From contig NIVC01002157.1 in NCBI GenBank assembly GCA_002269645.1, forward strand, positions 1 to 64,000: a stretch of DNA of 64,000 nucleotides, read 5' to 3'. The notes under the pieces are model-generated. The model was not told where the DNA came from. It ran no database searches and saw only the letters and a list, made by a program, of their open reading frames with translations. A program made the translations under genes and the position numbers. Below are positions 10,603 to 61,580 of the stretch, in pieces (positions within the stretch are counted from its first letter, which is position 1; every line of letters starts with the position of its first letter). Source of the stretch: Macrostomum lignano (taxonomy: Eukaryota).

Positions 10603-10633
<31 letters not shown>

Positions 10634-26724: not shown

Positions 26725-28533
26725 CGTCAGTCATCCTTAAACCATTCTAGCAGTCATCCTTAACCGATTCCAGCAATCATCCTTAACCGATTCCAGCAGT
26801 CATCCTTAACCGATTCCAGCAGTCATCCTTAACCGATCCCAGCAGTCATCCTTAACCGATTCCAGCAGTCATCCTTAACCGATCCCAGCAGTCATCCTTA
26901 ACCGATTCGAGCAGTCATCCTTAACCGATTCCAGCAGTCATCCTTAACCGATTCCAGCAGTCATCCTTAACCGATTCCAGCAGTCATCCTTAACCGATTC
27001 CAGCAGTCATCCTTAACCGATTCCAGCAGTCATCCTTAACCGATCCCAGCAGTCATCCTTAAACCATTCCAGCAGTCATCCTTAAACCATACCAACAATC
27101 ATCCTTAACCGATTCCAGCAGTCATCCTTAACCGATTCCAGCAGTCATCCTTAACCGATTCCAGCAATCATCCTTAACCGATTCCAGCAGTCATCCTTAA
27201 CCGATTCCAGCAGTCATCCTTAACCGATTCCAGCAGTCATCCTTAACCGATTCCAGCAATCATCCTTAACCGATTCCAGCAGTCATCCTTAACCGATTCC
27301 AGCAATCATCCTTAACCGATTCCAGCAATCATCCTTAACCGATTCCAGCATTCATCCTTAACCGATTCCAGCAGTCATCCTTAACCGATTCCAGCACTCA
27401 TCCTTAACCGATTCCAGCAGTCATCCTTAACCGATTCCAGCAGTCATCTTTAACCGATTCCAGCAGTCATCCTTAACCGATCCCAGCAGTCATCCTTAAC
27501 CGATTCCAGCAATCATCCTTAACCGATTCCAGCAATCATCCTTAACCGATTCCAGCAATCATCCTTAACCGATTCCAGCAGTCATCCTTAACCGATTCCA
27601 GCAGTCATCCTTAACCGATTCCAGCAATCATCCTTAACCGATTCCAGCAATCATCCTTAACCGATTCCAGCAGTCATCCTTAACCGATTCCAGCAGTCAT
27701 CCTTAACCGATTCCAGCAGTCATCCTTAACCGATTCCAGCAGTCATCCTTAACCGATTCCAGCAATCATCCTTAACCGATTCCAGCAGTCATCCTTAACC
27801 GATTCCAGCAATCATCCTTAACCGATTCCAGCAATCATCCTTAACCGATTCCAGCATTCATCCTTAACCGATTCCAGCAATCATCCTTAACCGATTCCAG
27901 CAATCATCCTTAACCGATTCCAGCAGTCATCCTTAACCGATTCCAGCAATCATCCTTAACCGATTCCAGCAGTCATCCTTAACCGATTCCAGCAGTCATC
28001 CTTAACCGATTCCAGCAATCATCCTTAACCGATTCCAGCAGTCATCCTTAACCGATTCCAGCAGTCATCCTTAACCGATTCCAGCAATCATCCTTAACCG
28101 ATTCCAGCAGTCATCCTTAACCGATTCCAGCATTTATCCTTAACCGATTCGAGCAGTCATCCTTAACCGATTCCAGCAATCATCCTTGACCAATTCCAGC
28201 AGTCATCCTTAACCGATTCCAGCAGTCATCCTTAACCGATTCCAGCAGTCATCCTTAACCGATTCCAGCAGTCATCCTTAACCGATTCCAGCAGTCATCC
28301 TTAACCGATCCCAGCAGTCATCTTTAACCGATTCCAGCAGTCATCCTTAACCGATTCCAGCATTCATCCTTGACCGATTCCAGCAGTCATCCTTAACCGA
28401 TTCCAGCAATCATCCTTGACCGATTCCATCAATCATCCTTAACCGATTCCAGCAGTCATCCTTAACCGATCCCAGCAGTCATCTTTAACCGATTCCAGCA
28501 GTCATCCTTAACCGATTCCAGCATTCATCCTTG
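26725..28533. repeat. 23-bp minisatellite immediately upstream of UBE2O
   Basis: About 78 copies of AGTCATCCTTAACCGATTCCAGC. Confidence 0.97.
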
Positions 28534-28802
28534 AACCTTGAAGTTGAAGTCTTTGAAGTCATTAAAATCCTTGATGCAATTGTATTTTTTAGTGAAACAC
28601 TGAAACGTTTATAAAAACGAGCTTATGATAAGGTCATTGTTAATTGCGCAAACAAGTATTGATCCTTTAGTTAGCGACATAAGACCTTATGCTAGAAATA
28701 TACCATAGCTAGCGGACAATAAAGCAGCATTTATTGCTATTCCCGCTACAGCTCGCCTTTAGAAATCTCGCGCCTGAGTGTTTGCCCGGTAACGCGCTAG
28801 AG

Positions 28803-40800: not shown

Positions 40801-43800
40801 GTTGGCAGTAGCCTTCCCTTTGGCAGGCTTTCCTCGGCGCAACTTGAGCTTGAGGGCACCCAGCTGGAAAGAGGATCCATTAGGGTACCGACTCGCCCAA
40901 GTGCTGGAAAGGCCGAGGACAATTGAGTTGCCCGTCTCCCCCTGCGGACTTTACGGTGATACACCAGTCCACTAGCAGGGAGGTCGGGGTTCAGACGCAG
41001 TAGGACCCGGCGAATAACGTCTGGTCCAGCTGCGGTGCTCTTAGCAGGGACGAAAACCACATAGGGTATCGTCTTTGGACGCTGGCCCTCGCGAAGAAAA
41101 AGAGCTCCGCCAAGGTCAGCATCCAAGGAGACCGTCGGTAGCCGCTGGAGCAGCCGCCGAGCGTCCTCCTCGCTGCTAGGAGCAATAAGAACGAATGTGC
41201 TTCGCAGCACCATCCGCTCAATGCCGATGGAGATTCCCTCCTCGACAGTCAGCTCAATCAGATAGGAGTCAACAGCACTCCACACTTTTTGAAGCTGATC
41301 AGTGGTCCAGTCCTGGTCGCGACCTTGGATGATCACTCCCGGGATTTTGGCCTTGGCCTTCGCCGCAAAGGTAGCTCCCGAAGGAACCTCCTTGTTGGCA
41401 GTGGCCATTTGTTGCGCCGTGGTTTCGGCCTCAGCAGCCGCGGCAGCAGCTCCAGGGAGCGCCGCCGCTGAACTACTGGAGCTTCCACCGGCCGGCCCGC
41501 CTGGTTGCCTTGGGACTCCAGTCGCTTCAGCATCCATGGTGGACGCCGCCGCTTTGGCCCCCGCAGCTCCCTTCTTGGCCTGCCTTTTGGCGCGTTGTTT
41601 AGCGCGTTTGCGCTCAAGCCGAGCCCGCTGAGCTTCATCGGATCTGCCAGATTTGGCCGGTCCTTTAGGCTCAGAGCTCGCGGTTCCCTTAGATCCACCA
41701 GCGGAGCTGGCAGGTCTTTGGGTATTTTGAGTTTGGTAGCTCTGGTCGGATCTGCCAGCAGAGCCAGCCGGTCCTTCCTTTGCCACAGTTGAATCAGTCG
41801 GTTGGGATCTGCCAGCAGGGCCGGCCGGTCCTTCGGACTGAGGTTGGGGTTTAGAAGGGTCCCCGTCCCTAGAGTTAGCTTGATTATCCATAGACGGCTC
41901 GAAGGCCATGATAAAAGGTTGGTGGGCTACCCTCAAAGGGGCGCGGTACCCACCCGGCCGCTCCACCTGACCGGGCAGTAGGCCAATAGCACCCTCAAGG
42001 CTGGCCCGACACCAGGAGGGGGACCGCTTGCGACCGGACTACTCCCCGGCCTTCCAGCCCATCGGCACGGTCAACACCTTAGGCATTAGAGAGTACGTTG
42101 AGCAGTACCACGGCCTGCAGGTTGGCGAGCCAGACCCGCATACCCAAATTCGGCCGAAGCCACTGGATAGGGTCGCCAGCGCCGGAGCCCAGTCTGTCCA
42201 GCAGCCCTAGGGACTGCCTTGAACACACGCGGGGACGAGTACCCTGGGTCGACTTGCGAGACAGCGTGGGGGGGGGGGTCTGCGGCTGCCAGAGGCAAAT
42301 AGAGGGTGCAGACCTCCCACCAGCCTTGACCTGCTGAAGATAGGGGCAGGCGTGAAGCATCGCAGACCTTAGCCCATGGGCCTGGTCTGTCTCATACTTC
42401 ACTGGCATGCTGAATACGCCTTCGCGTGCAATTGATGTTGATGCGTTTCTTTGTTCAAGCTTGCTTCTGCTACTTTTTTATTTTGTTGAGTGCCGACTTG
42501 AAAACTTCACAAGCAGCTTTTAAATGCCTTTTTCCAATTAGTGTTGATGTATTATTCTTCTTTGGCTTTGAAGTTCGCAAAGTTTCAATTTAGCAGATAT
42601 TAGCCACCTTCCTAATTAGGCATGTTTCTCTTCATTTCGAAACCAAGATAATGTGTTGCTTCAGACCTACACTCCACGTGTTAGTATATGATGTGAATTC
42701 ACACAATCACTCCGTAGCATGCTAATCTCAAATACAGTGTGACTTCACACATTCACTTCACTCCACAGAAAGCTTAATATCAAATACAGTGTGACTTCAC
42801 ACCTTCACTCCACAGCACACTAATCTCAAATACGGTGTGATTTCACACCTTCACTCCACAGCACACTAATCTCAAATACAGTGTGATTTCACACCTTCAC
42901 TCCACAGCGCACTAATCTCAAATACAGTGTGACTTCACACCTTCACTTCGCAGCTAGCTAATCTCTGTGTGACTTCACACCACTCGACAGCATGCTAATC
43001 TCAAATAGTGTGACTTCATACCTTCGCTTTAAATCACTCATCGTCTTACGGTGTGACGTCATGAATCTGTATGTGCTTTGCTAACTTTTTACGGCATTTT
43101 TCCCCAATTAAAACCAAAAAAACCGACAAACAGCGATCTGGTGCCGTTCGACGATTTCATGGAGAGCCAATTCTTTCCTGGCGATTTTGTGCTCAGCAGC
43201 CAGCAGCAGCTGCAGCTGGAGGCCGACATCGGCGACGGCTCCAATCCGGCAAGCTCGTCGATGCCCGATCGCTACGGGCTGGTGCTGGAGAATGACGTCA
43301 GGCAGAAGCTGGCTAGAGTGCAATGGTTTCGCGAGGGCCCGGCCGCCGCTACCGCTACCGGCGGCGCCTCCGAACCGCTTGGCCAGCCCGAGCTAGTGAG
43401 CACCATCGACCTAAAGGAGTACCCTATCTATGAGTACAGGCCCAGAACTATCGTGATGCTCAAGTCGCAGCAGTTGGTGGGCGATCAGCCCGAAGCGGCA
43501 GCGGCATCTCCGCCCGGCCCTATCCAGTTAGGCGACGTTGTGCGAGTGGTGCTGGAAACGGTGAGACTGCTGTGGGTCAGGGTTCAGATGTTGCTTCGGC
43601 GACATCGTTATAAAAAACTAGCGCTGAGCCAATCCTGCCCATTCCGCTGACTCCTGAGCAGATGCGAGCGCGTCGGTACTGTACGCAGGCACGTACTCAG
43701 GGTGTACAGTGCCCTGACTTTCTAATCGTCAGGCATGTACACTGTGCCTTGGGGGGAGGGGGTTGGCCGGCATGGGTTCGAGTCGCCAGACAACCCCCCG

Positions 43801-44196
43801 CCCTTCTCTAGCCAATTTTCATGCACAGGCTCCAAATTAAAGTTTAATTTGTTTAATAAATTATTAGAGCGCTAAACTCTAAATGAGCCAGGTAGTTGTG
43901 TCGCGATAGCTAGGTGTTGACCGCTGAGCTGCTCTGCACGAAATAGATAGATGGGTAGATGGACAGTTAGACAATGGGTATGTAGATTGACTGATTGATA
44001 ATCAGGTGGGCAGAAGGACAGACAGGCAGACACTAAGAATAGGCGACAGGTGGCGTCGTCCGAGCCGGTGGCGAAGGCGTTGCCGCTGGGGAAGAACTGG
44101 GATGTTGGGCAGTGCGGGGCGGGTGGGTTGGCGCTGCGAGACAGGGCACTGGACAGACAGAAAGACTGACAGACAGACAGACAGACAGACAGACAT

Positions 44197-44245
<49 letters not shown>

Positions 44246-44266
44246 TAGACAGACAGACAGACACTA

Positions 44267-44319
<53 letters not shown>

Positions 44320-45120
44320 GGCAGACACTGACAGATTGATAGACAGACAGACAGACACTAAGACACAGACAGACAGACACTAAGACACTAAGACGCAGAC
44401 AGACACACAGACAGACAGACACTAAGACCCAGACACACAAACAGACAGGGAGACACAGACAGACACTAAGACCCAGACAGACACACAGACAGACAGGGAG
44501 AGACAGACAGACACTAAGACACAGACAGACAGACACTAAGACCCAGACAGACAGGGAGACACAGACAGACACTAAGACCCAGACACACAAACAGACAGAC
44601 AGACACTAAGACACTAAGACGCAGACAGACACACAGACAGACAGACACTAAGACCCAGACACACAAACAGACAGGGAGACACAGACAGACACTAAGACCC
44701 AGACAGACACACAGACAGACAGGGAGAGACAGACAGACACTAAGACACAGACAGACAGACACTAAGACCCAGACAGACAGGGAGACACAGACAGACACTA
44801 AGACCCAGACACACAAACAGACAGGGAGACACAGACAGACACTAAGACCCAGAGAGACACACAGACAGACAGGGAGACACAGACAGACACTAAGACCCAG
44901 ACAGACACACAGACAGACAGGGAGACACAGACAGACACTAAGACACAGACAGACAGACAGACACTAAGACCCAGACAGACACACAGACAGACAGGGAGAC
45001 ACAGACAGACACTAAGACACAGACAGACAGACACTAAGACCCAGACAGACACACAGACAGACACTAAGACACAGACAGACAGACAGACAGACAGACAGAT
45101 AGACAGACAGACAGACACTA

Positions 45121-45173
<53 letters not shown>

Positions 45174-48100
45174 GGCAGACACTGACAGATTGATAGACAG
45201 ACAGACAGACACTAAGACACAGACAGACAGACACTAAGACACTAAGACGCAGACAGACACACAGACAGACAGACACTAAGACCCAGACACACAAACAGAC
45301 AGGGAGACACAGACAGACACTAAGACCCAGACAGACACACAGACAGACAGGGAGAGACAGACAGACACTAAGACACAGACAGACAGACACTAAGACCCAG
45401 ACAGACAGGGAGACACAGACAGACACTAAGACCCAGACACACAAACAGACAGACAGACACTAAGACACTAAGACGCAGACAGACACACAGACAGACAGAC
45501 ACTAAGACCCAGACACACAAACAGACAGGGAGACACAGACAGACACTAAGACCCAGACAGACACACAGACAGACAGGGAGAGACAGACAGACACTAAGAC
45601 ACAGACAGACAGACACTAAGACCCAGACAGACAGGGAGACACAGACAGACACTAAGACCCAGACACACAAACAGACAGGGAGACACAGACAGACACTAAG
45701 ACCCAGAGAGACACACAGACAGACAGGGAGACACAGACAGACACACAGACAGACAGGGAGACACAGACAGACACTAAGACACAGACAGACAGACAGACAC
45801 TAAGACCCAGACAGACACACAGACAGACAGGGAGACACAGACAGACACTAAGACACAGACAGACAGACACTAAGACCCAGACAGACACACAGACAGACAC
45901 AAAGACCCAGACAGACACACAGACAGACAGACAGACATTGACACAGATACTTCAGAAATAGATTGATCCACTTGGCATACGTAGTGTAAAAACTGGTAAT
46001 AAAAGTTTAATTCAGTTTCATTCTATTTCATCGCTAAATCAGCTGTTAGTGTCAATGCAAACTGATCTTCAAAGAGACCGGGAATTCAACTTGTTTCTTA
46101 AGCTGATAACCGCCCCCACTACCCCAGTGTAATTCTTCTTTTTTGTTTGCCGAAAATCCGACATATATTTGAGGATGGGAACTCTGCTGCCTACATATGT
46201 GCTTCAACCCCCCCCCCCAGTGATTCGAACTTCCTGCCTCCGTCTATTACAGTTGTTTGCTCAACAGCATACGCAATAGCTTATTATAACTACAAAGCTA
46301 TATTGCAGTGTGCGGGCTAGGCTGTCAGTGGAACAGTTTCTGTGTCTTCATTTTCTGGTTCTTATAGCATTCCATATATGTTCTATTAAAGAGCGCGTTA
46401 ATAAAATTACTTTTCGATACATATCGGTATAAGCATTACCTAACTATAAGTCTATTTAGGCCTATTCTAGCTTGTATGTAGTCTTATTATGTATCCTAGC
46501 GAATCACTTCCTAATAAAGTGTGCTTTCGATACATATCAACAGGGCAAAATTCGTGTCGCCTGGTTAGACGGCCAAGAGTCGGATCTGTGGCCCAGCGAG
46601 TTATTTAGTTTAGAAGGCCTTCTCAGTGGCGGCCCGGAGCAACGCTCGGCTAGCGAGTCTTCGAGCTTTTTCAACAATTTCGAAGCCGACTCGGACGATA
46701 ACGAATCCTGGGAGACGGAGAGCGAAGAGACCGCTGAGCCTGACGAGGCTGACCGAGTAGGCATTGTTGTTCAAGTCACCAGCGGCGGGGATGTAGTTGC
46801 TATGGCTACAGAGGGAGACGACGAGATGGGCGGAGTGGCTACTGCCGCCAATTCGAATTGCTGGCTGCCGCACCACGCCTCCTGCTCGGATGAGTGGGCC
46901 TGCGCTAGACAGGTGGGTTTTTTATAGTCTGTCGCAGTCTGTAATTGCTGTCATGGTAATTTTTGCATATTGTAGTTGCTGTCACTGATTTTTTCAGCCT
47001 GCAGTTGCTGTCACTGTGATTTTTGCAGTCTGTAGTTGCTGTCACTGTGATTTTTGCAGTCTGTAGTTGCTGTCACGGTGATTTTTGCAGCCTGTAGTTG
47101 CTGTCATGGTGATTTTTTGCAGTCTGTAGTTGCTGTCACGGTGATTTTTTGCAGTCTGTAGTTGCTGTCATGGTGATTTTTGCAGCCTGTAGTTGCTGTC
47201 ACGGTGATTTTTGCAGCCTGTAGTTGCTGTCATGGTGATTTTTTGCAGTCTGTAGTTGCTGTCACGGTGATTTTTGCAGCCTGTAGTTGCTGTCACTGTG
47301 ATTTTTGCAGCCTGTAGTTGCTGTCACTGTGATTTTTGCAGCCTGCAGTTGCTGTCACTGTGATTTTTGCAGCCTGTAGTTGCTGACACGGTGATATTTT
47401 GCAGCCTGTAGTTGCTGTCACTGTGATTTTTTGCAGTCTGTAGTTGCTGTCATGGTGATTTTTGCAGTCTGTAGTTGCTGTCACGGTGATTTTTGCAGTC
47501 TGTAGTTGCTGTCACGGTGATTTTTGCAGCCTGTAGTTGCTGTCATGGTGATTTTTGCAGCCTGTAGTTGCTGTCACGGTGATTTTTGCAGTCTGTAGTT
47601 GCTGTCATGGTGATTTTTGCAGCCTGTAGTTGCTGTCACGGTGATTTTTGCAGTCTGTAGTTGCTGTCACGGTGATTTTTGCAGTCTGTAGTTGCTGTCA
47701 CGGTGATTTTGCAGCCTGTAGTTGCTGTCACTGTGACTGTCGCAGCCTGTAGTTGCTGTCATACCGGCTGTCACGCAGGCTGTCACAGCATCCATCGCAC
47801 TCTGTGCCTTCTATATGCTGCTGTCCTATGCTGCCGCCATTTTAGGTTGGTGTCCAGCTCAGGGAGCCGCTGCGACTCATTGCCGACTGCCTACGCGAGG
47901 CTGTAAACGCAAATGCCTGTCGTACGGTAACATCAACAGTAGTGCACAGCATCCACCAGGCGCTGGACACCATCCTGCTGACAGCCCACGGCCTGCGCAC
48001 CCAGCTGCACGACCTGCGCTCTCGGCCGTCCTGCCTGTGCCGCAATGCCACAGCTAGTCAGCGCCAGGCTCTGCTGCAGTTCTCCAGCCACCTGCGGCAC

Positions 48101-51100
48101 CTCACCGCCGACACCGGCTGCCTGGAGGCCTTCACCGATCCGGAGGCCATGCCGGACAAGCTGGCGCCGTTGCGTCACGCGCTCACTCTGCGCCGTCCCG
48201 ACGAGCAGCTGCTAGTGGATCAGCAGCAACGCGTTGTGCCAACATTTGTGCCGAGGGTGTCCAATCCGCTGTCCGACTCGCTTAGGCGCCTGTGGCAGTC
48301 GGCCACCAGCCTGATGCGGGCCGGGCCCGACTTGCCGCCTGCTGAGCTGGACACTGACGCCCAGTTGGACGTGCCAGATGTGCGTTTGATTTGCCAGTCT
48401 GTCTGGACCTTCTGCTGTTTGTTTGTTGCTTATTGCATTTCCATTCGAGTTCAAAGCTGTAGTTTGGGACCGATCTTTGTTCGTATTCATCTGAAGGATT
48501 CTTTGGAGATTAAGAATTTTAGTTTTGAGGTTTGGATTCTTAGTTTTGAGGTTGGGATTCTTAGTTTTGAGGTTGGGATTCTGAGGTTGGGATTCTTAGT
48601 TTTAAGGCTGGGATTCTTAGTTTTTGAAGTTGGGATTCTTAGTTTTGAGGCAGAGATTCTTAGTTTTGAGGTTGGGATTCTTAGTTTTGAGGTTGGGATT
48701 CTGAGGTTGGGATTCTTAGTTTTAAGGCTGGGATTCTTAGTTTTTGAAGTTGGGATTCTTAGTTTTGAGGCAGGGATTCTTAGTTTTGAGGTTGGGATTC
48801 TTAGTTTTGAGGTTGGGATTCTGAGGTTGGGATTCTTAGTTTTGAGGCTGGGATTCTTAGTTTTTGAGGTTGGGATTCTTAGTTTTGAGGCAAGGATTCT
48901 TAGTTTTGAGGCTGGGATTCTTAGTTTTGAGGCTGGGATTCTTCGTTTTTGAGGTTGGGATTCTTAGTTTTGAGGCAGGGATTCTTAGTTTTGAGGTTGG
49001 GATTCTTAGTTTTGAGGCTGGGATTTTTAGTTTTGAGGTTGGGATTCTTAGTTTTGAGGCTGGGATTCTTAGTTTTGAGGCTGGGATTCTTAGTTTTGAG
49101 GTAGGGTTTTTTAGTTTTGAGGCTGGGATTCTTAGTTTTGAGGCTGGGATTCTTAGTTTTGAGGTTGGGATTCTTAGTTTTGAGGTTGGGATTCTTAGTT
49201 TTGAGGTTGGGATTCTTAGTTGGAAGATTGGGATTATTACGAGATTGAGATCACTAGTTTGGGTTTAGGTTTTACAAGCATTTTAAGGGGGTGGATTTTT
49301 ATGATTTGTTTGTTTAAACCTTACTAATTTTGATTGAATGTTTGTTGTTTTGTTTCTATATTGATGTTGATGCTCTGTGCTTTGACTGCTGTGTTTTAAA
49401 AGAAATCCAGTAATTTCAACCCGATGTCTGGACTTTAATAAGATAAAAGATGCATATAAAGACAATAAAGACAATAAAGACATAATTTCTGGTCCAGGCT
49501 CAATGATAAAACCGCTCCTGAAGGGTATAGCAAGCTTGTCAGAGAGCGCATCGGTTGCAAAGAAACAACAATTCACAGGACTAACCAGTAATGGTTTAGA
49601 ATCGATTCATCTGTAATTAAATACACTCCAGCCGAAATGAGTAACAAAGAATGCTTGAAACGGATTAATGTCGGAATCGGCTGCCTTGAATGCGAATCAG
49701 TATTGGATTGATGGGCGCATTTGTTAGTTAGCTAACTAATTCCATAGCTAAATTGCCTGCAGATAAAATGGCTATGAATAAACTAATGAACTGTTTTGAT
49801 TCTTTCCAAGCATTGCATACTATTGTCTTCAAACAGCCGTGCCCCTCTGAAGCTTCTAGTATTCCCCTCTGGAGCTTCTATTATTCCCCTCTGGAGCTTC
49901 TAGTATTCCCCTCTGGAGCTTCTAGTATTCCCCTCTGGAGCTTCTAGTATTCCCCTCTGGAGCTTCTATTATTCCCTTCGGGAGCTTCTAGTATTCCCCT
50001 CTGGAGCTTCTAGTATTCCCCTCTGGAGCTTCTAGTATTCCCCTCTGGAGCTTCTAGTATTCCCCTCTGAACCCTCCAGCATTCTCCTCTGAACCCTCCA
50101 ATATTCCCCTCTGAACTCTCTAGTAATTCCCTCTAAACCCGCTAGAGCAACTCTGGAGAATGGTCTATTTATTCTTGCTTAGCAATCTACTTTTTGAACA
50201 ATAAAAATCATAATAAATAGCTCTTTTTATGGCTAACGCACACTTATCTTGCTCGTTGATATACACCTGTACATAACAGACCATGTTCTGTCGTTGTGCA
50301 TACTAGTACGCTCATATATGCATATCGTACTGGGTTGGCCGGCTGTCTTGTTGCATTAGCGAATCGCAGGTCAACGCACTGGACTCCTGTCCTATGTGTA
50401 TAAATATACTCCAATAAATTGCGGCTTTTTCAAGCCTCGTATTCAATGCATCCTATCTCTGGTGATCCATATCGAGTCTACTTTAGGTCACTTTCATTCT
50501 CTTCTCTAACGCGCATATTAAGAGAGCCTTATCCTGTGTGCGCGAGTAAGCTTTTTGGCGAGATTGCTTAATCGAGTTACCATAGGCCCGGCGGCTTTCT
50601 AGTTAGATTGCAGTAACTCACTGTGTTGTTAGTGTCTCCCTGGCTTACTAGGGGAGTTTTGGAATTACCTTGATGAGGCAGTAGCGGATGCCTGCCTGAC
50701 TCTCTCGGTGTGTCACTTCCTGCTTTCAGACTGCTAAATTTGATAGTTTTTTAAAGTAAATATGCCTGTAGTAATGTAATACTCTAGACCAAACAAGTCG
50801 ATGTGTGTCAATCGTACTACCCATTGTTCTCAAATATGTAAGAACAGGTTTACCTTCATCTATTCTCTTAAAAAATTTCGATGGAATCGAAATCTACGAA
50901 GGTCCGTCGATGCATAGTAGAATGCTTAACACTTTGGTAACCTTTAGAAAGACTGCAAACAAGGCGTTGGCTGGCTTGGATTGAAGATTGAAAATATAAT
51001 CTCTCCGAATTAGTCAAAACAATGGCCGTTTTGACTTTGAAACTCAGTCCTAAATTTGACGGAAATGGCATCAGTTACTATTTTTGCGCAATCGCTAATG

Positions 51101-54100
51101 TTCAAGACTTCAAGCTAAAGAGATTTGCTATCAAGTTATCTCAAGACTTCAAGCTAAGGAGATTGCTATCAAGTTATCTCAACACTTCAAGCTAAGGAGA
51201 TTGCTATCAAGTTATTTCAAGACTTCAAGCTAAAGAGATTTGCTATCAAGTTATCTCAAGACTTCAAGCTAAGGAGATTGCTATCAAGTTATCTCAAGAC
51301 TTCAAGCTAAGGAGATTGCTATCAAGTTATCTCAAGACTTCAAGCTAAGGAGATTGCTATCAAGTTAACTCAAGACTTCAAGCTAAGGAGATTGCTATCA
51401 AGTTATCTCAAGACTTCAAGCTAAGGAGATTGCTATCAAGTTAACTCAAGACTTCAAGCTAAGGAGATTGCTATCAAGTTATCTCAAGACTTCAAGCTAA
51501 GGAGATTGCTATCAAGTTATCTCAAGACTTCAAGCTAAGGAGATTGCTATCAAGTTAACTCAAGACTTCAAGCTAAGGAGATTGCTATCAAGTTATCTCA
51601 AGACTTCAAGCTAAGGAGATTGCTATCAAGTTATCTCAAGACTTCAAGCTAAGGAGATTGCTATCAAGTTATCTCAACACTTCAAGCTAAGGAGATTGCT
51701 ATCAAGTTATTTCAAGACTTCAAGCTAAAGAGATTTGCTATCAAGTTATCTCAAGACTTCAAGCTAAGGAGATTGCTATCAAGTTATCTCAACACTTCAA
51801 GCTAAGGAGATTGCTATCAAGTTATCTCAAGACTTCAAGCTAAGGAGATTGCTATCAAGTTAACTCAAGACTTCAAGCTAAGGAGATTGCTATCAAGTTA
51901 TCTCAAGACTTCAAGCTAAGGAGATTGCTATCAAGTTGTCTCAACACTTCAAGCTAAGGAGATTGCTATCAAGTTATCTCAAGACTTCAAGCTAAGGAGA
52001 TTGCTATCAAGTTTTCGCAAGACTTCAAGCTAAGGAGATTGCTATCAAGTTATCTCAACACTTCAAGCTAAGGAGATTGCTATCAAGTTATCTCAAGACT
52101 TCAAGCTAAGGAGATTGCTATCAAGTTGTCTCAACACTTCAAGCTAAGGAGATTGCTATCAAGTTATCTCAAGACTTCAAGCTAAGGAGATTGCTATCAA
52201 GTTATCTCAAGACTTCAAGCTAAGGAGATTGCTATCAAGTTATCTCAACACTTCAAGCTAAGGAGATTGCTATCAAGTTATCTCAACACTTCAAGCTAAG
52301 GAGATTGCTATCAAGTTATCTCAACACTTCAAGCTAAGGAGATTGCTATCAAGTTATCTCAACACTTCAAGCTAAGGAGATTGCTATCAAGTTATCTCAA
52401 CACTTCAAGCTAATGAGAATTGCTCAAGTTATCTCAAGACTTCAAGCTTAAAGACTCAAACTAATTATACGGTTTACCATGTTCGTGTAGATTTTCCATA
52501 CGGATTAGTTAAGGAAGAGAGAGCATCATAACGTGGAGTGAAGACTACAGTTAGCTTCGTTTAGCTACATACCACATTGCGTGCACCGAAGCCATTCTGG
52601 TTGTGAACTATTATCTGGTTTGGATTGTGGATAAGTCATATCATCGTCTTTCGTGATACCTGAGCCTAAAATGTGTCTTATAGGATAAAGCAAGATTACT
52701 CTGGGGCACACTTTGAGACAAGCTGTGGTGACAACTTGGCAGCAAGCGACTTTTTTGCATGATTCGCAGCTTCCCTCCCTACTTTTTAATATCTTCTCTA
52801 TCACTCTGCTAGTCGAATATTTTTCCGCGATTCTGTCTACGTACTGGGGTACACTAGGCGTAGAACTGGGCGATAATATTCCCATGCGGCCTGGTTCCCA
52901 CGCTTAGGGATGAGGGAGAAGCTAATCGCCTTAAGCACAGGATCTTCATTTCTACTAAAGCACTGCAAATTTCTGGCACTGCAAATAGATTTTCAATGGC
53001 ACTAAAATCAGTAGACTTTTGGCAGGAGGGGGGGGGCAAAATCTGCACACAAGTCTTCTGCTCCCTTGGGTAGGATAATTTTATTGTCGCTATGAGGGAT
53101 TGTGGTGAGAGAAGATATTTTAATGGAAAGAGAGTGGTGGAAGATAATAGGAAGAATGGCAGAAAATATGATAAGGAATGGTAAGATATACGGGAGAGAA
53201 GGCTGTGAGATCTGGCAGATGTAGGTAGGAGAATTGTAGGAAATACAGAAAAAGAACAGTCAGAAGGCGAGAAGTAAAATCTACGAAGTACGACAAAGGG
53301 GTCACTCCACCTGACTAAAGGCGGGTTGTGACACAACGGTATCACATTACATAATATGCCCGAAGGCATATTATAGAAGTGAGACATACCTGTGGCAACA
53401 TTTGTACTCACCCACGCATTTATACTCTTGATGAGGAAAGGAAGCGAAATAAATAGCATAGCAGAACTGCATCTTGATCAGGCCACGATGTGGGACGCCC
53501 ACTCTTCCATTAGCTCATTTGCATAATTAGCCCACAATATAAAGGATTAGAAGGCCTTTATAGCTAATGAGGTTTTGAATTCACCTGTTACGAGTTTGTC
53601 GTCTGCACGCGACCAAACTTAGAGATATTAACACGAGCATAGATGACAATTGAATTGCTCCATTTGCTCCATTGGATTACAGACTGTGAGGCTAGAAAAT
53701 TACCTAATATATTCAAATTGATATAGCTAGTCTGTGTGAATGAAAGTGTTAGTAAACCATGTTGACAAAACGCAAATTGACAAAACATTTCTCTCCCTCT
53801 CTCTGATGTCAATCAGAAAGATTGAAATCCCTACTATAGGTGCTCTCTGCTCTATTTTTCTCCTCGATTTCGCTCTCGCCTTGTTTGCTCTGTGACGTGT
53901 GTCGCCTACATCGATAACGCTTCCTCTCTGCTTGGTACTTCAAACTACTCGGCACTCGGCCAAAAATGCATGGCCAGCCATTCAGTCCCGCACTTCAGTT
54001 AGGCGTGTAATACTTGATGGAGCAAAACTTGATGGAGCAAAACCAAGTGGGGACTCACCAAAGCATAAGAGAAGTTCGAGAATAGGTGAAATGCAACTGG

Positions 54101-57100
54101 GATCAAGTGTTAAGAGGAAAATGGCATATGCGGGGCAAAGCAAAGGCAACTAGTACGCTCGTATTTCCTTTTAAGCGCTGTCCTCGGCTCTATTAAAAAT
54201 GCAGTAAAAAGCATTAAAAGAAAGTAAAAAGAGACGTAAGACTAAATTGTTTTTATTGCTTGTTCTTGAGATATTTATTGTCAAAACACTCCTAATTGTA
54301 GGTGGAAAATTAATTCGGTTCATTACATCATAGACGTTTGACATCTATTATTATACCTTTTCCGGACATCTTCTGAACTGAAAAAAAAATTGTCTGCTAT
54401 TAAAAATAATCATGCTCATACGAGCTATAACCTGTGTCACATCCACCTTTTAGCTATATTAAAATCTCCGCAAGATTTTGGTGTCTAAAACCCTACAGTG
54501 CATTTGTATCCTTGAGCTAGAATATTAATGCAAGCAACGCCCCGGATTTTTGCTGATATTTCAAGTGCTACCGATGTCAACTGGCTTCAGATGGGACTTT
54601 CTGCAGGCATTTAGACTGCTGGCTTGAAGCAAGCGATATTCTTAATCCTGAAAGCAGCATCACACTTCTTTGGCTAAGTCTCTTAGCACTCAGGAAGATT
54701 TTCCTTCTAAGTAGAAAGCAATCCGTGTTTTTGGGACTGATTTCATCTGGATTTCCTACTCTTTAGTGGCTCTTCCTAGCTTGACTGCTTGAAGTTCGTG
54801 TTTCCTGTGTCTATCCTGCCCTTTCGTTTCCAACTCGATCGCTTCATTTGCTAGTTTGACTCGCTTTCATGCCTGCTCCTCTGATCGATCTCTTCATCAG
54901 CTACTGCAAGCTTGTCAGGTTAATACTTGGCATCTGACTTGCTTCGCCCTCTAATTTTATTATGCAGATTCTGAATCAATCGAAATGTCAATGCTAAGTT
55001 ACTCTCTCTCTAAAGGGTGGCACAGGTTGTGCAGTCTGTTTACTTTGATTGCTCAGAAGTGGTCGCTGGCTTATTGTATTAATATATTTATTTCCGCTTC
55101 TCAAACAGCATGCGCAACAAAAAGATCTAAGCGCGCTGATGCTGCATCAGTTTGCACTGGCACAATTTCTACGGAGCGAGAGCGAGAGGGAGAAGAAAAT
55201 AGGAAAATTAAAGGCGCGACACCGAATTCAATTGGATGCGAGTCGGGGTTTCAACGTCAATTCAAATCTTTCTTCAACTGCTTTCTGTTGGTATACGTCT
55301 GCATTAGATTATTGTCTGGCTCATTGTGACCGCAAATTGTTTGTTAGCCTAGAGTATTATTCATTCATACAACGCGAACAAAGTTTCCGCGATTAATCTA
55401 TTATTCAGTCTTGAAGTTCGTCAAACATCTTGCCACGGAGCGGTGTGAACGAGAACCTCTTGCCGCGAAGCGGAGTGAACCTCTTGCCGCGAAGCGGAGT
55501 GAACTTCTTGCCGCGAAGCAGAGTGAATCTCTTGCCGCGAAGCGGAGTGAACCTCTTGCCGCGAAGCGGAGTGAACCTCTTGCCGCGAAGCGGAGTGAAC
55601 CTCTTGCCGCGAAGCGGAGTGAACTTCTTGCCGCGAAGCAGAGTGAACTTCTTGCCGCGAAGTGGAGTGAACTTCTTGCCGCGAAGCGGAGTGAACTTCT
55701 TGCCGCGAAGCGGAGTGAACTTCTTCCCGCGAAGCGGAGTGAACCTCTTGCCGCGAAGCGGAGTGAACCTCTTGCCGCGAAGCGGAGTGAACCTCTTGCC
55801 ACGAAGCGGAGTGAACCTCTTGTCGTTCGAGCTCTCATCGTCCAGTTCTTGCTCTTCGCCGTCGTCCTCCTGATCGTAGTAGGGCTCTCGGTCGTACGCG
55901 GTCGGGCTATTAACTTCGCTCAGTGCTTGCATCAGGTTGCGAACCTCGAATTCCGATGGTTCGTTCTCGCCCGTCAGCGCTTCCGGCTGATGCTGCTCTT
56001 GCTTTTGCTCCGTCGACGTAGCGTAGGCGGTTGAGAACACCGCCAAAGATACCAAGATGGCCACATATTGGGCGTACTTACACCTCGGCTTCATTTTCGC
56101 TCTTCACGCTATAGTTTAAAGCTGAACAGAAAAAGCCGATCAGTTGCCTCCTTGACTCTGCCAGTTGTGCTTTATGGAGTCCAGTTTGGAGAGCTAGGTT
56201 GCCGCTCCAGTGTGTCTTTCTTCGCGTTGAATTTCTGCCTCTTTTTATCCCCACTCTTTCCTGCAACGGAGCAGGGGTGGTTGCAGTTTTGCTCCGCATT
56301 TCATCAGCATTGCGCGCTGAGTCCAATTGGCTTCCACGGGTTGGATCCTATCAGAGTAAAGCTTCGGTGTTTGTCATGTTAGGATGCGATTTCCCCCACT
56401 GGCCGCACGCATACTCTCAATAACCTCGACTCTCAACTTTAAGCTTTTGTTTAAAAGCTATAATTTCTTTTTGGAAAATAATACAACTGAACCAACTTGA
56501 CGAGCCATTTGCAAATTAAATTCAATTTTAGCCGCTTGTGTCTCGGTTTGAAATTCGAATCTCATGAACTGTAGCTATGGAAACATAATTAGGTTTGCTC
56601 TTCTGGTATGGTTTTTTTATTATCTAGCTTGTAGATATCTATCATAATAAATAACGACAAAAATATTATATTGAAGGACTTTCATTACACATTAGAAATA
56701 CGCAAAAAGAAATAACTACTTAAAATATGTGGAAGATAATCGGTAATATGACCTGAAGCTTGTTATTGATTTGAGAACTCACTGTGCCCTTATTGGCTTT
56801 AGTAATAGGCATTGACGTTGCTGATCCAAGTCTGCCGCATGATTATCCGCAGTGTCAGTTTCGTTGCTTGCCGCTCATTTCTAGTTGCTTTTGTCCATCC
56901 ATCGTAAGGAGAAAATCGAAGCTTGAAATAGTTCTATCTTTTTTCTCCTACTTGCGGAGAAAAGACAAAGCCAATTTTCTCTTTTGGGCGGCTCCTCGGC
57001 AATCGATCGACTTTTGAGGGGAAATGCCGGCCAGTCTTTTCCGATCCCAATCTGGCCTTGCAGTATGTTGTTTATTATAATTCAACAAAGCAGAAAAGCA

Positions 57101-60100
57101 TACAGCGTGTTTTTAACTAAAGAGCGCGCGCTTCTTGAGCCTGTGCCTGTCTATTAAACTTGATGATGTTCTTGGGATGTGCCACCGAACTCGTAAAAAC
57201 TGTCGATACTATACTGTTTAACGGTTCATATTATGCCGTGTTGACTAAACCCAAACCCAGATTCCAGAATCCACTTTTGATTAATACTAAACTTCTTCAA
57301 TAATCAATAAAAAACCTTAATTAAAGCCGTAACACAATTTCGGACAGATTCAAAGATTAAAGTGCTGCAATAGAAGTACATAAAAATTTTCGCTTCACTC
57401 TTGTTTGACAGCGTGGTACAACTCTGAAAATTTAGGTATAGAGAGTTACTTTTTGTAGATATCAATGCTTTGGAGAATTAACAACTACAGCAATAAATAT
57501 AGTTAAATTTCGTTGCACCTGTAACCAAGACTGTGCTTGTCATGTATAGTCTGCAGTCCACATATTGAATTAGTCATTTTGCTTCTACATACTTCAGAGC
57601 TTAAACTCTTATTTACTCCCCACCCCACCCCCGCTCTATGCAGTACAACGCCATGCAAGAGATGATGCAGCTGCTGTACGGTCAGGTGCGACTTCGCATG
57701 GGCAGCCAGTTGACCGAGGCTACCCGCAACAATCTGGAATTCTTTCGCAGCACTATTTGCCGAGTTATGCAAGTCGAAATTGCCGAGGTAGCGGTGCCGG
57801 AGTCTACGGCTGGGACCGGAACTGCCGATCAGGTCTGTCGGTGGCCAATAATGGACAATGGTAGCTAAGGATAGGCAATGATGGACAATGGTAGCTAACG
57901 ATAGGCAATGATGGACAATGGTAGCTAAGGATAGGCGATGATGGACACAATGGTAGCTAACGATAGGCGATGATGGATAATTAATGGTAGCTGAGAATAG
58001 ACACTGATGGACACAATGGTAGCTAAGGATATGCAATGATGGACAATTGTAGCTAAGGATAGGCAGTGATGGGCAATGGTAGCTAAGAATAGACAATGAA
58101 AGCTAGGGATATGGCAAGGACAGCTAGGATAGACAATGAAAGCTAGGGATATGGACAAGGACAGCTAGGATAGACAATGAAAGCTAGGGATATGGACAAG
58201 GACAGCTAGGATAGACAATGAAAGCTAGGGATATGGCAAGGACAGCTAGGATAGACAATGAAAGCTAGGGATATGGACAAGGACAGCTAGGATAGACAAT
58301 GAAAGCTAGGGATATGGACAAGGACAGCTAGGATAGACAATGAAAGCTAGGGATATGGACAAGGACAGCTAGGATAGACAATGAAAGCTAGGGATATGGG
58401 CAAGGACAGCTAGGATAGACAATGAAAGCTAGGGATATGGGCAAGGACAGCTAGGATAGACAATGAAAGCTTGGGATATGGGCAAGGACAGCTAGGATAG
58501 ACAATGAAAGCTAGGGATATGGCAAGGACAGCTAGGATAGACAATGAAAGCTAGGGATATGGACAAGGACAGCTAGGATAGACAATGAAAGCTAGGGATA
58601 TGGGCAAGGACAGCTAGGATAGACAATGAAAGCTAGGGATATGGCAAGGACAACTAAGGATATGGCAAGGACAACTAAGGATAGACAATGAAAGCTAGGG
58701 ATATGGCAAGGACAACTAAGGATAGACAATGAAAGCTAGGGATATGACAAGGACAACTAAGGATAGACAATGAAAGCTAGGGATATGGCAAGGACAACTA
58801 AGGATAGACAATGAAAGCTAGGGATATGGCAAGGACAACTAAGGATAGACAATGAAAGCTAGGGATATGGCAAGGACAACTAAGGATGCAGACGCAGTTA
58901 ATAATGCTCAGCGGTATGTTCATTGGCGGCGGTCACAGGAGCAGACGGATCGCCAAGCCTCAAACCCAGCGTCGGCCTCCAAGCCAGCAGCACGTCCAAC
59001 CGCATCTCCGGCAGCCGAGGGCGGAGCCGGCACCTTCCTCCTAGTCGAATGCGCCCCGCCAACGCATCTGCACTACGCCGAGTCAGCCTTCTCCAGTTCC
59101 GGCCTGCCGCCGAAGGCGTTCGTTTCCGCCTGGAGACGCGAACTGGCCCTTCTTGGCGACCACCTGCCCAGGGGCGTCACCGTCAAAGCTTACGAGGACC
59201 GGATGGACCTCATGGCCGTTCTCATCGAGGGCCCGGCCGGAACACCCTACTCTGGCGCCCTGTTCCTATTCGACCTTCATCTGCCAACTGCTTATCCCGC
59301 TCAGCCGCCGCGCCTGCTCTATCGATCCATGTGCTCTGGTCGGCTCAATCCCAACCTGTACGAGTGCGGCAAGGTGTGCGTCTCGTTGCTGGGCACCTGG
59401 GACGGGCAGGGCACTGAGCGGTGGGCACCGGGCGAATCAAACCTGCTGCAGGTGAGCTTTTGTAGTTGAACTGCTAGATATTCGATTTTTGTCTGTATCC
59501 AGTATCTCAGATAGCTAGTTAAAATCCCAATTTGAAAATCCCAGATCCTCAATAAAATCCCCATCTGAAAATCCCAGATCCTCAATAAAATCCCAATCGG
59601 AGGATCCCAAATCCTCATTAAAATCCAAATCGGAGAATCTTAAATCCTCATTAAAATCCCAATCTAAGAATCCCAAAATCTTCATTAAAATCCCCATCTG
59701 AAAATCCCAGATCCTCATTAAAATCCAAAATCTTCATTAAAATCCCCATCTGAGAATCCCAAATCCTCATTAAAATCTCATCTGAGAATCCCAAATCCTC
59801 ATTAAAATCCCAATCTGAAAATCTCAGCTTATTAAAATCCCCATCTGAAAATCCCAACTCATTAAGATACCAATCTAAAATCATTTGACCGCCGCCAGGT
59901 GCTGGTGTCGGTGCAGGGCCTGATCCTAGTCGAGGAGCCGCTATTCAACGAGCCCGGCTACGAGAAGGGCACCCAGGCGGCCGCGGTGAAGAGTCGCGAA
60001 TACAACGAGCTGGCCGTGGTCCGAACCGCCCAGTCGATGGCCAGTCTGGTCTCCTCGCCGCCGGACACGTTTGCTGCCGAGGTCGGCCGCTACGCTGAAA

Positions 60101-60255
60101 CTCGCTTGCGGAGCTACGCCGACCAGCTGGCCGACTGGCTGGCCGACCGCGGCCGGCCGGGCTTCCCGCTGCTGCCGCTGTCGGCCGGAGCCAAGCTGTC
60201 GCTCACTGCGGTGGTCAGGAGACTCACAGAACTTGCCGATAAGGTGCAGGGGTAG
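28803..60255 (+). CDS. UBE2O: UBE2O (E2-230K) E2/E3 hybrid ubiquitin-conjugating enzyme, 10 exons, 1312 aa
   Basis: Exons 28803-29258, 30024-30130, 32018-32428, 35918-36493, 43134-43560, 46544-46912, 47846-48379, 57644-57832, 58939-59451 and 59899-60255. All GT-AG with matching phases (0,2,2,2,0,0,0,0,0); 3939 nt. Motifs [38 protein letters not shown], and a UBC domain ([67 protein letters not shown]) with the catalytic Cys. Confidence 0.93.
29325..29845. repeat. 22-bp minisatellite in UBE2O intron 1
   Basis: ATTTCCCATCGTACATGGTAGG units with an internal duplicated block. Confidence 0.9.
29884..29981 (-). mobile_element. tRNA-derived SINE 5' fragment
   Basis: AAGTGTCTTGCTCAAGGACACAAATTGTT...GAATCGAACCCCCGACCTTC...CTCTAACCACTAGG. 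Confidence 0.85.
30690..31886. repeat. 34-bp minisatellite in UBE2O intron 2
   Basis: About 35 copies of AGCTGGTCATTGTGCAGGGTCCTCACCTTCATGT. Confidence 0.97.
32419..32955 (+). repeat. 53-bp minisatellite whose unit contains the exon-3 5' splice site
   Basis: About 10 copies of GCTTTGC|GTGAGTCCGCATCTGTCTGCGTGGGTCCAAGTGGGTCAAGGATGCA; the donor hexamer recurs every 53 nt from 32429 to 32906. Confidence 0.95.
33490..33630. repeat. 24-bp minisatellite in UBE2O intron 3
   Basis: About 5 copies of GGTCCTTCGGTTGAGCCGCCCTAT. Confidence 0.8.
34751..35803. repeat. 62-bp minisatellite in UBE2O intron 3
   Basis: About 17 copies of AAAAGCCCCCTGTAAACTGAGTACACAGAGCTGCAGTTCACCCTGCTGTGGTAGGGTAGCGT. Confidence 0.97.
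36629..40366 (-). CDS. Retrotransposon ORF2: AP endonuclease, reverse transcriptase, RNase H and CCHC finger (about 1246 aa after three single-base frame corrections)
   Basis: [30 protein letters not shown] (APE); PKPGK..FRPISL, F(L)[21 protein letters not shown] (RT); YTDGS, EVLAI, SDSQAAL, WVPGH..GNELAD (RNase H); [14 protein letters not shown]. -1 shifts near 40304, 38877 and 38614. Confidence 0.9.
40406..41909 (-). CDS. Retrotransposon ORF1 (gag-like, DUF4780-type by eye; about 501 aa after two single-base frame corrections)
   Basis: [10 protein letters not shown]..., basic/Ala-rich linker, [13 protein letters not shown]; -1 shift at the C5 run 40938-40942 restores [22 protein letters not shown]; probable second shift at the C7 run 40507-40513 gives an acidic end [16 protein letters not shown]. 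Confidence 0.75.
42715..43030. repeat. 46-bp minisatellite in UBE2O intron 4
   Basis: About 6 copies of AATCTCAAATACAGTGTGACTTCACACCTTCACTCCACAGCACACT. Confidence 0.85.
44037..44096 (-). pseudogene. GNB1: Orphan G-protein beta subunit exon fragment (20 codons) preceded by its 3' splice site
   Basis: CCCAACATCCCAG|TTC TTC CCC AGC GGC AAC GCC TTC GCC ACC GGC TCG GAC GAC GCC ACC TGT CGC CTA TTC = [20 protein letters not shown], versus human GNB1 234-253 [20 protein letters not shown] (19/20). It then breaks into TTAGTGTCTG repeats. Confidence 0.85.
44145..45945. repeat. Complex (GACA)n/GACACTAAG array with an 854-bp higher-order duplication
   Basis: Identical repeat-derived ORFs at 44264/45118 and 44514/45368, offset by 854 nt. 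Confidence 0.95.
46925..47790. repeat. Minisatellite of about 32 bp filling UBE2O intron 6
   Basis: About 26 copies of GCAGTCTGTAGTTGCTGTCACGGTGATTTTT(T). Confidence 0.95.
48515..49225. repeat. 21-bp minisatellite in UBE2O intron 7
   Basis: About 33 copies of GGGATTCTTAGTTTTGAGGTT. Confidence 0.95.
49845..50140. repeat. 22-bp minisatellite in UBE2O intron 7
   Basis: About 12 copies of CTCTGGAGCTTCTAGTATTCCC. Confidence 0.9.
51103..52450. repeat. 38-bp minisatellite in UBE2O intron 7
   Basis: About 35 copies of CAAGACTTCAAGCTAAGGAGATTGCTATCAAGTTATCT. Confidence 0.97.
55405..56094 (-). CDS. Neuropeptide prohormone, 229 aa: signal peptide, acidic spacer and 16 amidated peptides (13 FTPLRamide, 2 FTLLRamide, 1 FSFTPLRamide); nested antisense in UBE2O intron 7
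   Basis: Hydrophobic N-terminus [25 protein letters not shown]; D/E-rich propeptide; peptides flanked by KR/KK dibasic sites with a Gly amidation donor (last copy GK). Acceptor-like TTTTCTGTTCAG just upstream of the ATG; AATAAA at 55087-55092 (minus strand). Confidence 0.93.
   Translation of the reverse strand: MKPRCKYAQYVAILVSLAVFSTAYATSTEQKQEQHQPEALTGENEPSEFEVRNLMQALSEVNSPTAYDREPYYDQEDDGEEQELDDESSNDKRFTPLRGKRFTPLRGKRFTPLRGKRFTPLRGKKFTPLRGKKFTPLRGKKFTPLRGKKFTLLRGKKFTPLRGKRFTPLRGKRFTPLRGKRFTPLRGKRFTLLRGKKFTPLRGKRFTPLRGKRFSFTPLRGKMFDELQD
57848..58886. repeat. Minisatellite (23-bp grading into about 41-bp units) filling UBE2O intron 8
   Basis: GATAGGCAATGATGGACAATGGTAGCTAA, then AGGATAGACAATGAAAGCTAGGGATATGGACAAGGACAGCT units. 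Confidence 0.95.
59515..59880. repeat. Minisatellite of about 33 bp in UBE2O intron 9
   Basis: AAAATCCCAGATCCTCATTAAAATCCCAATCTG-like units. Confidence 0.9.
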
Positions 60256-60309: not shown

Positions 60310-61580
60310 AAATGGATTGCTAATCTAGCCAACTGGATTATTGTGGATTGCTAATCTAGGCAACTGGATTATAGTGGATTGCTAATCTAGCCAACTGGAT
60401 TATTGTGGATTGCTAATCTACCCAACTGGATTAGAGTGGATTGCTAATCTAGCCAACTGGATTATTGTGGATTGCTAATCTAGCCAACTGGATTATAGTG
60501 GATTGCTAATCTAGCCAACTGGATTATTGTGGATTGCTAATCTAGGCAACTGGATTATAGTGGATTGCTAATCTAGCCAACTGGATTATTGTGGATTGCT
60601 AATCTACCCAACTGGATTAGAGTGGATTGCTAATCTAGCCAACTGGATTATTGTGGATTGCTAATCTAGCCAACTGGATTATAGTGGATTGCTAATCTAG
60701 CCAACTGGATTATTGTGGATTGCTAATCTACCCAACTGGATTAGAGTGGATTGCTAATCTAGCCAACTGGATTATTGTGGATTGCTAATCTAGGCAACTG
60801 GATTAGAGTGGATTGCTAATCTAGCCAACTAGATTATTGTGGATTGCTAATCTATCCAACTGGATTAGAGTGGATTTCTAATCTAGCCAACTGGATTAGA
60901 ATTGATTATAGTGGATTGCTAATCTATCCAACTGGATTAGGAATTGATTGCTAATCTATCCTACTGGATTAGGAATGGATTGCTACTCTATCCAACTGGA
61001 TTAGAGTGGATTGCTAATTTATCCAACTGGATTATAGTGGATTGCTAATATAGGCAACTGGATTAGAGTGGACTGCTAATCTAGGCAACAGGATTAGAGT
61101 GGATTGCTAATCTAGCCAACTGGATTAGAGTTGATTAGAGTGGATTGCTAATCTATCCCACTGGATTAGAGTGGATTGCTAATCTATCCAACCGGATTAA
61201 AGTGGATTGCTAATCTAGGCAACTGGATTAGAGTGGATGGTTAATTTAGCCAAATGGATTAGAGTTGATTAGAGTGGATTGCTAATCTATCCCACTGGAT
61301 TAGAGTGGATTGCTAATCTAGCCAACTGGATTAGGAATGGATTGCTGCTCTATCCAACAGGATTAGAGTGGATTGCTAATCTAGCCAACTGGATTAGAGT
61401 TGATTAGAGTGGATTGCTAATCTATCCCACTGGATTAGAGTGGATTGCTAATCTATCCCACTGGATTAGAGTGGATTGCTAATCTATCCAACCGGATTAA
61501 AGTGGATTGCTAATCTAGGCAACTGGATTAGAGTGGATTGCTAATCTAGGCAACTGGATTATAGTGGATTGCTAATCTAA
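60310..61580. repeat. 31-bp minisatellite starting 55 nt after the UBE2O stop codon
   Basis: About 40 copies of GTGGATTGCTAATCTAGCCAACTGGATTA(TT/GA). Confidence 0.95.

Follow-up and report, generated by a model that had tools for sequence, protein, structure and literature searches.

Tachykinin signalling is regarded as ancestral to bilaterians. Flatworms are a stated gap on the ligand side: a 2019 review found that no flatworm tachykinin had been discovered and its table has no platyhelminth entry (PMC6880623), though tachykinin-like receptors have been annotated in monogeneans and schistosomes, among them a G protein-coupled receptor (GPCR) of the tachykinin clade in a monogenean and a tachykinin-like receptor in S. 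japonicum. Here we describe a possible ligand gene in Macrostomum lignano, found in a 64,000-nucleotide stretch of DNA (contig NIVC01002157.1 of assembly GCA_002269645.1, positions 1 to 64,000 of the forward strand), to which we refer as the window and whose numbering is used throughout. The gene is a reverse-strand open reading frame (ORF) at 55405–56094 that encodes sixteen tandem units of the type FTPLR. From its sequence this locus is very likely a genuine amidated secretory-peptide precursor nested in an intron of UBE2O. Much more tentatively, and with the arguments for and against almost in balance but on the doubtful side, we propose that the precursor is a flatworm tachykinin-type (FxxxRamide) peptide precursor.

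The closest described peptides are the tachykinins of other protostomes. The motif FxxxRamide is common to the tachykinin-related peptides (TRPs) and the natalisins (PMC4730192), insect TRPs typically having the form FxGxRamide and the natalisins of Diptera the form FxPxRamide (PMC4730192; PMC6880623). In spiralian tachykinins the central Gly is usually unconserved, as in the cores FTALRa, FAPMRa, FHALRa, FTMPRa and FHAVRa (PMC6880623; the final a denotes the amide). The listed spiralian members include oyster FGFAPMRa, ARFFGLRa and FRFTALRa, scallop YGFHALRa, Anodonta pEYGFHAVRa, Capitella AYPSGFTMPRa and Platynereis QPPQGFHAVRa (PMC6880623 Suppl. Table S1), and masses have been reported for the oyster tachykinins (PMC4200219). 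Alanine scans of the oyster peptides showed that only the first F and the last R are critical for receptor activation (PMC9521575). In the tachykinin precursors of protostomes there are multiple paracopies, and after each one come a Gly and a dibasic site (PMC9521575).

The M. lignano precursor has a similar arrangement. A complete prepropeptide coding sequence occupies 55405..56094 on the minus strand (229 aa plus a TGA stop), apparently as a single coding exon as judged from the list of ORFs. The initiating ATG stands in the context gcgaaaATGaag and is preceded, 12 nt upstream, by a TGA in the same frame, and the product is identical to that of a gene already called on NIVC01002157.1 in GCA_002269645.1. 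The N-terminal 25 residues (56020..56094, minus strand) resemble a signal peptide when judged by classical features only, namely n-region charge, hydrophobic core and the residues at -3 and -1: there are three basic residues in the n-region (+3), a hydrophobic core with a 9-residue Kyte-Doolittle mean of up to 3.06, and small residues at -3/-1 (A-Y-A) that close the putative signal peptide, with cleavage predicted after Ala25. An acidic spacer or propeptide of 66 aa (55822..56019, minus strand) follows, with 21 D+E residues and a net charge of -18. It leads into the peptide array at 55432..55821 on the same strand, which consists of 16 units K[KR]-F-T-[P/L]-L-R-G, fifteen of them 24 nt long and the last 30 nt long with an FS insertion; the whole repeat block comprises 130 residues with a net charge of +48.

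In-frame parsing of the array gives FTPLR in 13 units, FTLLR in two and FSFTPLR in one, which reproduces exactly the coordinates and unit counts of the first-pass annotation of this DNA, together with its signal-like peptide and acidic spacer; its description of the layout as that of a canonical prohormone, with signal peptide, acidic spacer and tandem units of dibasic site, peptide and Gly, is likewise borne out. That annotation had also described sixteen dibasic-flanked units, and here a small correction is needed: Gly is present in 16/16, but dibasic sites stand on both sides of only 15. The last unit and the C-terminal tail (KMFDELQD) lie at 55408..55461 on the minus strand, and there is no dibasic site after the Gly of this unit, only a single Lys (G-K-M), so that release of FSFTPLRamide, the sole extended peptide of the series, is doubtful. 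Tandem Repeats Finder reports the array at 55453–55822 with a 24-bp period, 15.4 copies, 95% matches and no indels. A probe of one 21-nt unit finds 16 copies, all within the array and none elsewhere in the window, with 0 expected in shuffled sequence.

Sequence elements flanking the ORF are consistent with an mRNA. A candidate 3' splice or trans-splice acceptor, GGCTTTTTCTGTTCAG, with a polypyrimidine tract and CAG, is predicted at 56122..56137 (minus strand), 27 nt before the ATG; trans-splicing affects 38.8% of the genes of M. lignano (PMC5730564). On the 3' side, AATAAT variants situated 43 and 91 nt downstream of the stop are candidate poly(A) signals, and the first canonical AATAAA, at 55087..55092 (minus strand) and 312 nt downstream, may be another.

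A plausible scheme for maturation of the precursor can be inferred from its sequence and the established prohormone pathway. The signal peptide would be removed after Ala25, and prohormone convertases would cut after each K-R or K-K pair, R-G-K-R being a strong convertase site because of the Arg at P4. Carboxypeptidase E would trim the basic residues, and peptidylglycine alpha-amidating monooxygenase would turn the exposed Gly into a C-terminal amide. Each precursor would then yield approximately 13 FTPLR-NH2 and 2 FTLLR-NH2 (predicted [M+H]+ 632.3878 and 648.4191 respectively) together with the acidic propeptide. The processing machinery exists in M. lignano, since the nervous system of this animal has a PC2 homologue, whose knock-down is lethal (PMC4490696). 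In this scheme the peptide would act on a tachykinin-type GPCR as the flatworm version of the protostome TRP (FxxxRamide).

The repeat block is extremely basic, and a secreted but non-neuronal product is an alternative: either an uncleaved polycationic protein, or peptides of the adhesive, prostate/seminal or epidermal glands that serve as exocrine, pheromonal or antimicrobial agents. Exocrine tachykinins are indeed known from mosquito saliva, wasp venom and the octopus salivary gland, but their precursors carry a single peptide copy each (PMC9521575). In the M. lignano precursor a Gly stands before the basic pair in every one of the 16 units, and the acidic spacer offsets the positive charge of the array; together these form the specific signature of amidated-peptide prohormones, and we regard a non-neuronal role as improbable.

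Whether the ORF is a gene at all has to be weighed with the setting in mind, as the window holds 27 minisatellite arrays and simple or tandem repeats make up 15% of the M. lignano genome (PMC5730564). A non-functional origin would require a GC-rich 24-bp minisatellite, open in five frames by chance, to lie next to an ORF that begins with hydrophobic residues; the called gene would then be an annotation artefact of intronic or antisense transcription. By a rough estimate (not computed by a tool) about 5% of stop-free 24-bp units would encode Gly plus a dibasic pair in some frame by chance. However, the part of the ORF outside the repeat looks like coding sequence. We derived a codon table from the verified exons of the window (655 codons) and used it to score the 91 non-repetitive codons of the signal peptide and spacer, which gave a log-likelihood ratio of +0.165 per codon in the called frame, as against -0.25 to -0.67 in the other five frames, each of which also contains stops. 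Of 5000 random 273-nt pieces drawn from the host intron, none reaches the called-frame score (their maximum is 0.057). The GC content at third positions of the non-repeat codons is 0.71, compared with 0.74 in the verified exons, and the ORF as a whole forms a GC island (57% GC, against about 41% in both flanks).

The array itself also behaves as coding sequence. Among the 27 tandem arrays in the window the periodic pattern of Gly and dibasic pair occurs in this one only, where it falls in frame with the ATG and the hydrophobic N-terminus. Six of the eight types of repeat variant are synonymous in the called frame, against an expectation of 26% (binomial p = 0.0057); the remaining two change the protein, one as R>K at the dibasic site and the other as P>L. 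Compared with the consensus core, the 16th unit has synonymous changes only (ACT>ACA, CTT>CTC and CGC>CGT) in addition to a 6-nt insertion, so that even this diverged terminal unit keeps FTPLRG. That a signal peptide, an acidic spacer, an array in frame with them and a bias towards synonymous variation should all coincide makes a chance minisatellite very improbable as the source of the ORF, more so than an exocrine product. There are nevertheless several points that tell against a coding gene. The test of synonymous and replacement changes rests on eight variant types only, 5/8 are also synonymous in one antisense frame, which has its wobble positions in common with the called frame, the repeat is young or homogenised (95% identity), and the host intron is crowded with minisatellites.

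The GenBank annotation of GCA_002269645.1 was built solely from RNA-seq-derived transcripts and TransDecoder ORFs (PMC5730564), and given the spliced 1329-aa model of the neighbouring gene we infer that the called 229-aa model reflects this RNA-seq-based deposit, which would be indirect evidence that the gene is expressed. On the opposite strand a 207-aa ORF with a TTG start (55411–56034, plus strand) is open through the repeat and most of the spacer. Its codon-usage score is negative, no homologue supports it and nothing in UBE2O matches it. GC-rich coding regions are commonly open on their antisense strand, and this is the best reading of the ORF.

We turn now to the identity of the peptide, which we tentatively assign to the tachykinin type because of its C-terminal signature, Phe at -5 and a predicted amidated Arg at -1. 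F-T-P-L-R with its Gly donor would, once amidated, conform to FxxxRamide, and the 15–16 copies agree with the several paracopies of protostome tachykinin precursors. Particularly close is Cragi-TK3 of the oyster Crassostrea gigas, FRFTALRamide, the core of which (FTALR) shares four of five positions with FTPLR, and five of seven positions match when the whole peptide is compared with the 16th unit, FSFTPLR. The core FAPMR of Cragi-TK1 (FGFAPMRamide) shares the Pro at position 3. Both of the residues that are critical at the oyster receptor, the first F and the last R, are present in FTPLR, and at the level of the precursor the oyster tachykinins and the M. lignano protein are alike in having a signal peptide and several paracopies, each with Gly and basic residues. 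The first-pass annotation had taken the Arg-amide end to be unusual, which is not supported, as FxxxRamide is the shared motif of protostome TRPs and natalisins (PMC4730192).

A number of observations weigh against the tachykinin assignment. FxxxRamide fixes two residues only, and it was matched after several families had been considered. The central Gly of FxGxRamide is replaced by Pro in 13 units and by Leu in 2. Tachykinins usually have about 6–12 or more residues, with an extension before the Phe, and those listed all have at least 6, usually with G or an aromatic residue before the Phe; 15 of the M. lignano units are bare pentapeptides, shorter than any of them. Whereas oyster and other spiralian tachykinins come as 2–7 varied copies of 6–7 or more residues, the M. 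lignano precursor has about 15 nearly identical ones. The units also resemble planarian ppl-1 (F-S-P-R-M/L-amide) in their first three residues. Homology at the level of the whole precursor between the M. lignano protein and the spiralian tachykinins is not detectable.

Notwithstanding these differences, the precursor is probably best described, from its sequence, as a candidate flatworm tachykinin-type precursor; the terms new family and scrambled pyrokinin fit it less well. The claim of a new family is weakened because FTPLRamide sits inside the known variation of spiralian tachykinins, although the part of it that concerns this species stands, the peptide being uncharacterised in M. lignano as far as the searchable literature goes. 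If the assignment is right this would be the first tachykinin-type ligand in Platyhelminthes, in an extreme form in which a bare five-residue receptor-activating core is repeated some 15 times in one precursor; we hold this a little less firmly than the assignment itself.

The dipteran natalisin consensus FxPxRamide is formally matched by FTPLRamide, and natalisin precursors are also multi-copy. Natalisins differ, however, in length (15–24 residues in Drosophila) and in having a distinct clade of receptors. They have been reported only from arthropods and tardigrades (Panarthropoda; PMC4730192, PMC6880623) and the organism here is a flatworm; we therefore do not place the peptide among them, and any relationship could only be through shared tachykinin ancestry.

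Database searches were uninformative in several respects. Two word-indexed searches, one with the full precursor and one with its non-repetitive first 101 residues, returned no relative from collections that are without Macrostomum proteins. An exhaustive phmmer search of 1.84 billion representatives gave 331 matches, all to the repeat region of unrelated proteins with a period of 8 (mucin-like GTPSTGKT, ETPQRGGV, VRGARGTG and others), which we rejected as reflecting periodicity and composition. UBE2O served as a control: its best matches in the clustered protein collection are 45–56% identical, which indicates that no Macrostomum proteins are present there, and the 229-aa precursor is absent as well. 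Because that collection holds no Macrostomum proteins, the null results are uninformative about close relatives or congeners, and for M. lignano the absence of homologues in the collections searched is not evidence of absence. Two degenerate back-translated DNA patterns found 0 matches in metagenome contigs. In the searchable literature FTPLRamide, PLRamide and FTPLRG retrieved only bradykinin-related frog peptides and unrelated matches, the main flatworm peptide catalogues not being covered, and the M. lignano precursor gene may already bear an npp-type name. Neither PLRG nor TPLR nor LRGK occurs in the planarian catalogue (Collins 2010 supplements), where the single-copy npy-9 is the one genuine Arg-amide product.

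These results bear on a further explanation, that the precursor encodes a lineage-specific orphan neuropeptide or hormone, processed in the same way but unrelated to tachykinins and acting on a receptor outside the tachykinin clade. The failure of the two word-indexed searches and the phmmer search to find a homologue speaks for an orphan, as does the failure to find FTPLRamide as a neuropeptide in the searchable literature; flatworms have many lineage-specific prohormones, for example spp-1 to spp-19 of planarians, and FTPLRa has only five residues and no central Gly. Short repetitive precursors are, however, nearly invisible to homology searches, and with protein collections that lack Macrostomum sequences the negative is a weak one. 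The peptide moreover has both receptor-critical residues and agrees with the oyster core at four of five positions. An orphan origin appears to us rather unlikely, if by no means negligible.

The first-pass annotation had described the peptide as a pyrokinin with its last two residues swapped. The Arg at -2 and the hydrophobic amide at -1 that define pyrokinins are absent, and the description fails on that account. Planarian Smed-ppl-1, which encodes the pyrokinin/sCAP-like peptides YFSPRMamide and YFSPRLamide, is nevertheless built in the same way, from a signal peptide, a spacer and KR-YFSPRM/LG units in tandem (PMC2953531), and both animals are flatworms. The M. lignano gene might then be a diverged PRXamide precursor orthologous to ppl-1, in which the C-terminal R-L has been changed to L-R, each exchange of R and L being one transversion per codon. 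In BLASTP the two precursors align with E = 7e-08, with units in the register F-[TS]-P-x-x-G-K-[KR], but this score is inflated by the repetition and the alignment needs one gap per unit (period 8 against period 9). The shared F-[S/T]-P is followed by R-M/L-amide in ppl-1 and by L-R-amide in M. lignano, and the PRXamide C-terminus is absent in 16/16 units. The essential Arg would have had to move, by two coordinated substitutions fixed across the whole array and with co-evolution of the receptor, and orthology with ppl-1 has in our judgement only a small chance of being correct. As to membership of the pyrokinin/PRXamide family as such, the units end P/L-L-R-Gly, with Arg at -1 and not at -2, and the peptide does not belong there.

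A further match is that to the Pfam family Bradykinin (PF06753), which scores 51.7 bits where the cut-off is 20.7. Its source is the [Thr6,Leu8]-type bradykinin-related peptides of frogs and birds (..PPGFTPLR), which contain an identical FTPLR; frog peptides such as RVALPPGFTPLR end in this pentapeptide (PMC4210874). The match covers only 7 of 19 profile positions (8–14), however, and the score is summed over the repeats. The N-terminal RPPG half of bradykinin is absent, and beyond the motif nothing is similar. [quoted passage not shown] The likelihood that this is a precursor of bradykinin-related peptides is vanishingly small. The units do not have the form RPPGF[ST]P[FL]R with a free C-terminus, and the Pfam match is an artefact of a motif multiplied by repeats, FTPLR being a coincidental short motif.

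Should the tachykinin-type assignment prove correct, the peptide would be a candidate ligand for the orphan tachykinin-like GPCRs of flatworms, including those of parasitic species. The ligand gap is directly testable in M. lignano because transgenesis, RNA interference and a sequenced genome are available for it. Were the peptide an orphan instead, a high-copy amidated peptide would be added to a poorly catalogued neuropeptidome.

The host gene is transcribed from the plus strand, and UBE2O domains are found on both sides of the peptide gene. Upstream are the SH3-B domain at 43078–43650 (Pfam PF23043, 2.1e-08) and an exon with SH3-C at 46472..46927 (Pfam PF23044, 1.3e-07), which is the nearest verified upstream coding segment. 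The last two exons, with the UBC core and the C-terminus, lie downstream within 58852..60255 (58852–59469 and 59899–60255; Pfam UQ_con, 2.9e-17), and tblastn of 120 UBE2O homologues matched only at 58.9–59.5 kb and 59.9–60.3 kb. The deposited UBE2O model, of 1329 aa, spans the peptide ORF on the opposite strand and ends at 60255. As these plus-strand domains flank the ORF and the model spans it, the peptide gene is nested antisense in a UBE2O intron of about 10 kb, in agreement with the first-pass annotation; the mean intron of the M. lignano genome is 1.1–1.4 kb (PMC5730564). Near the presumed 5' end of the host intron a plus-strand ORF (47942–48952) starts in an apparent UBE2O exon and stays open into a 21-bp array at 48519–49239 that encodes FEVGILS repeats.

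Several minisatellites share the host intron with the peptide gene, and repeat masking could easily hide small repeat-encoded genes in such a setting. Minisatellite density is very high across the window, many of the 27 distinct arrays being 1–2 kb long at 95–97% identity; examples are those at 25114–26133, 26708–28537, 30693–31886, 34751–35804, 44152–45937, 51102–52448 and 60313–61579. A run of (GACA)n of about 1.8 kb explains a spike of AT skew at 44–46 kb.

An upstream intron of UBE2O contains a retrotransposon of the non-LTR (long terminal repeat) type on the minus strand (36629–41966). Its ORF at 38874–40283 encodes an APE-type endonuclease (Exo_endo_phos_2, 3e-21), that at 36629–38521 a reverse transcriptase and RNase H, and that at 40683–41966 a basic protein of ORF1-like appearance without a Pfam match; given the split reading frames, the copy may be degraded. 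Further away, at 9353–11283 on the minus strand, is a gene for a WD40 beta-propeller protein with exons in the ORFs 9353–9736 and 10693–11283. It has a 22-bp array in its intron (9859–10126), and immediately upstream of it is a 21-bp array with one open frame (11393–11675). Upstream of UBE2O, a plus-strand ORF of 417 aa (21430–22683), rich in Pro, Ser and Ala and without a Pfam match, could be an exon of an uncharacterised gene.

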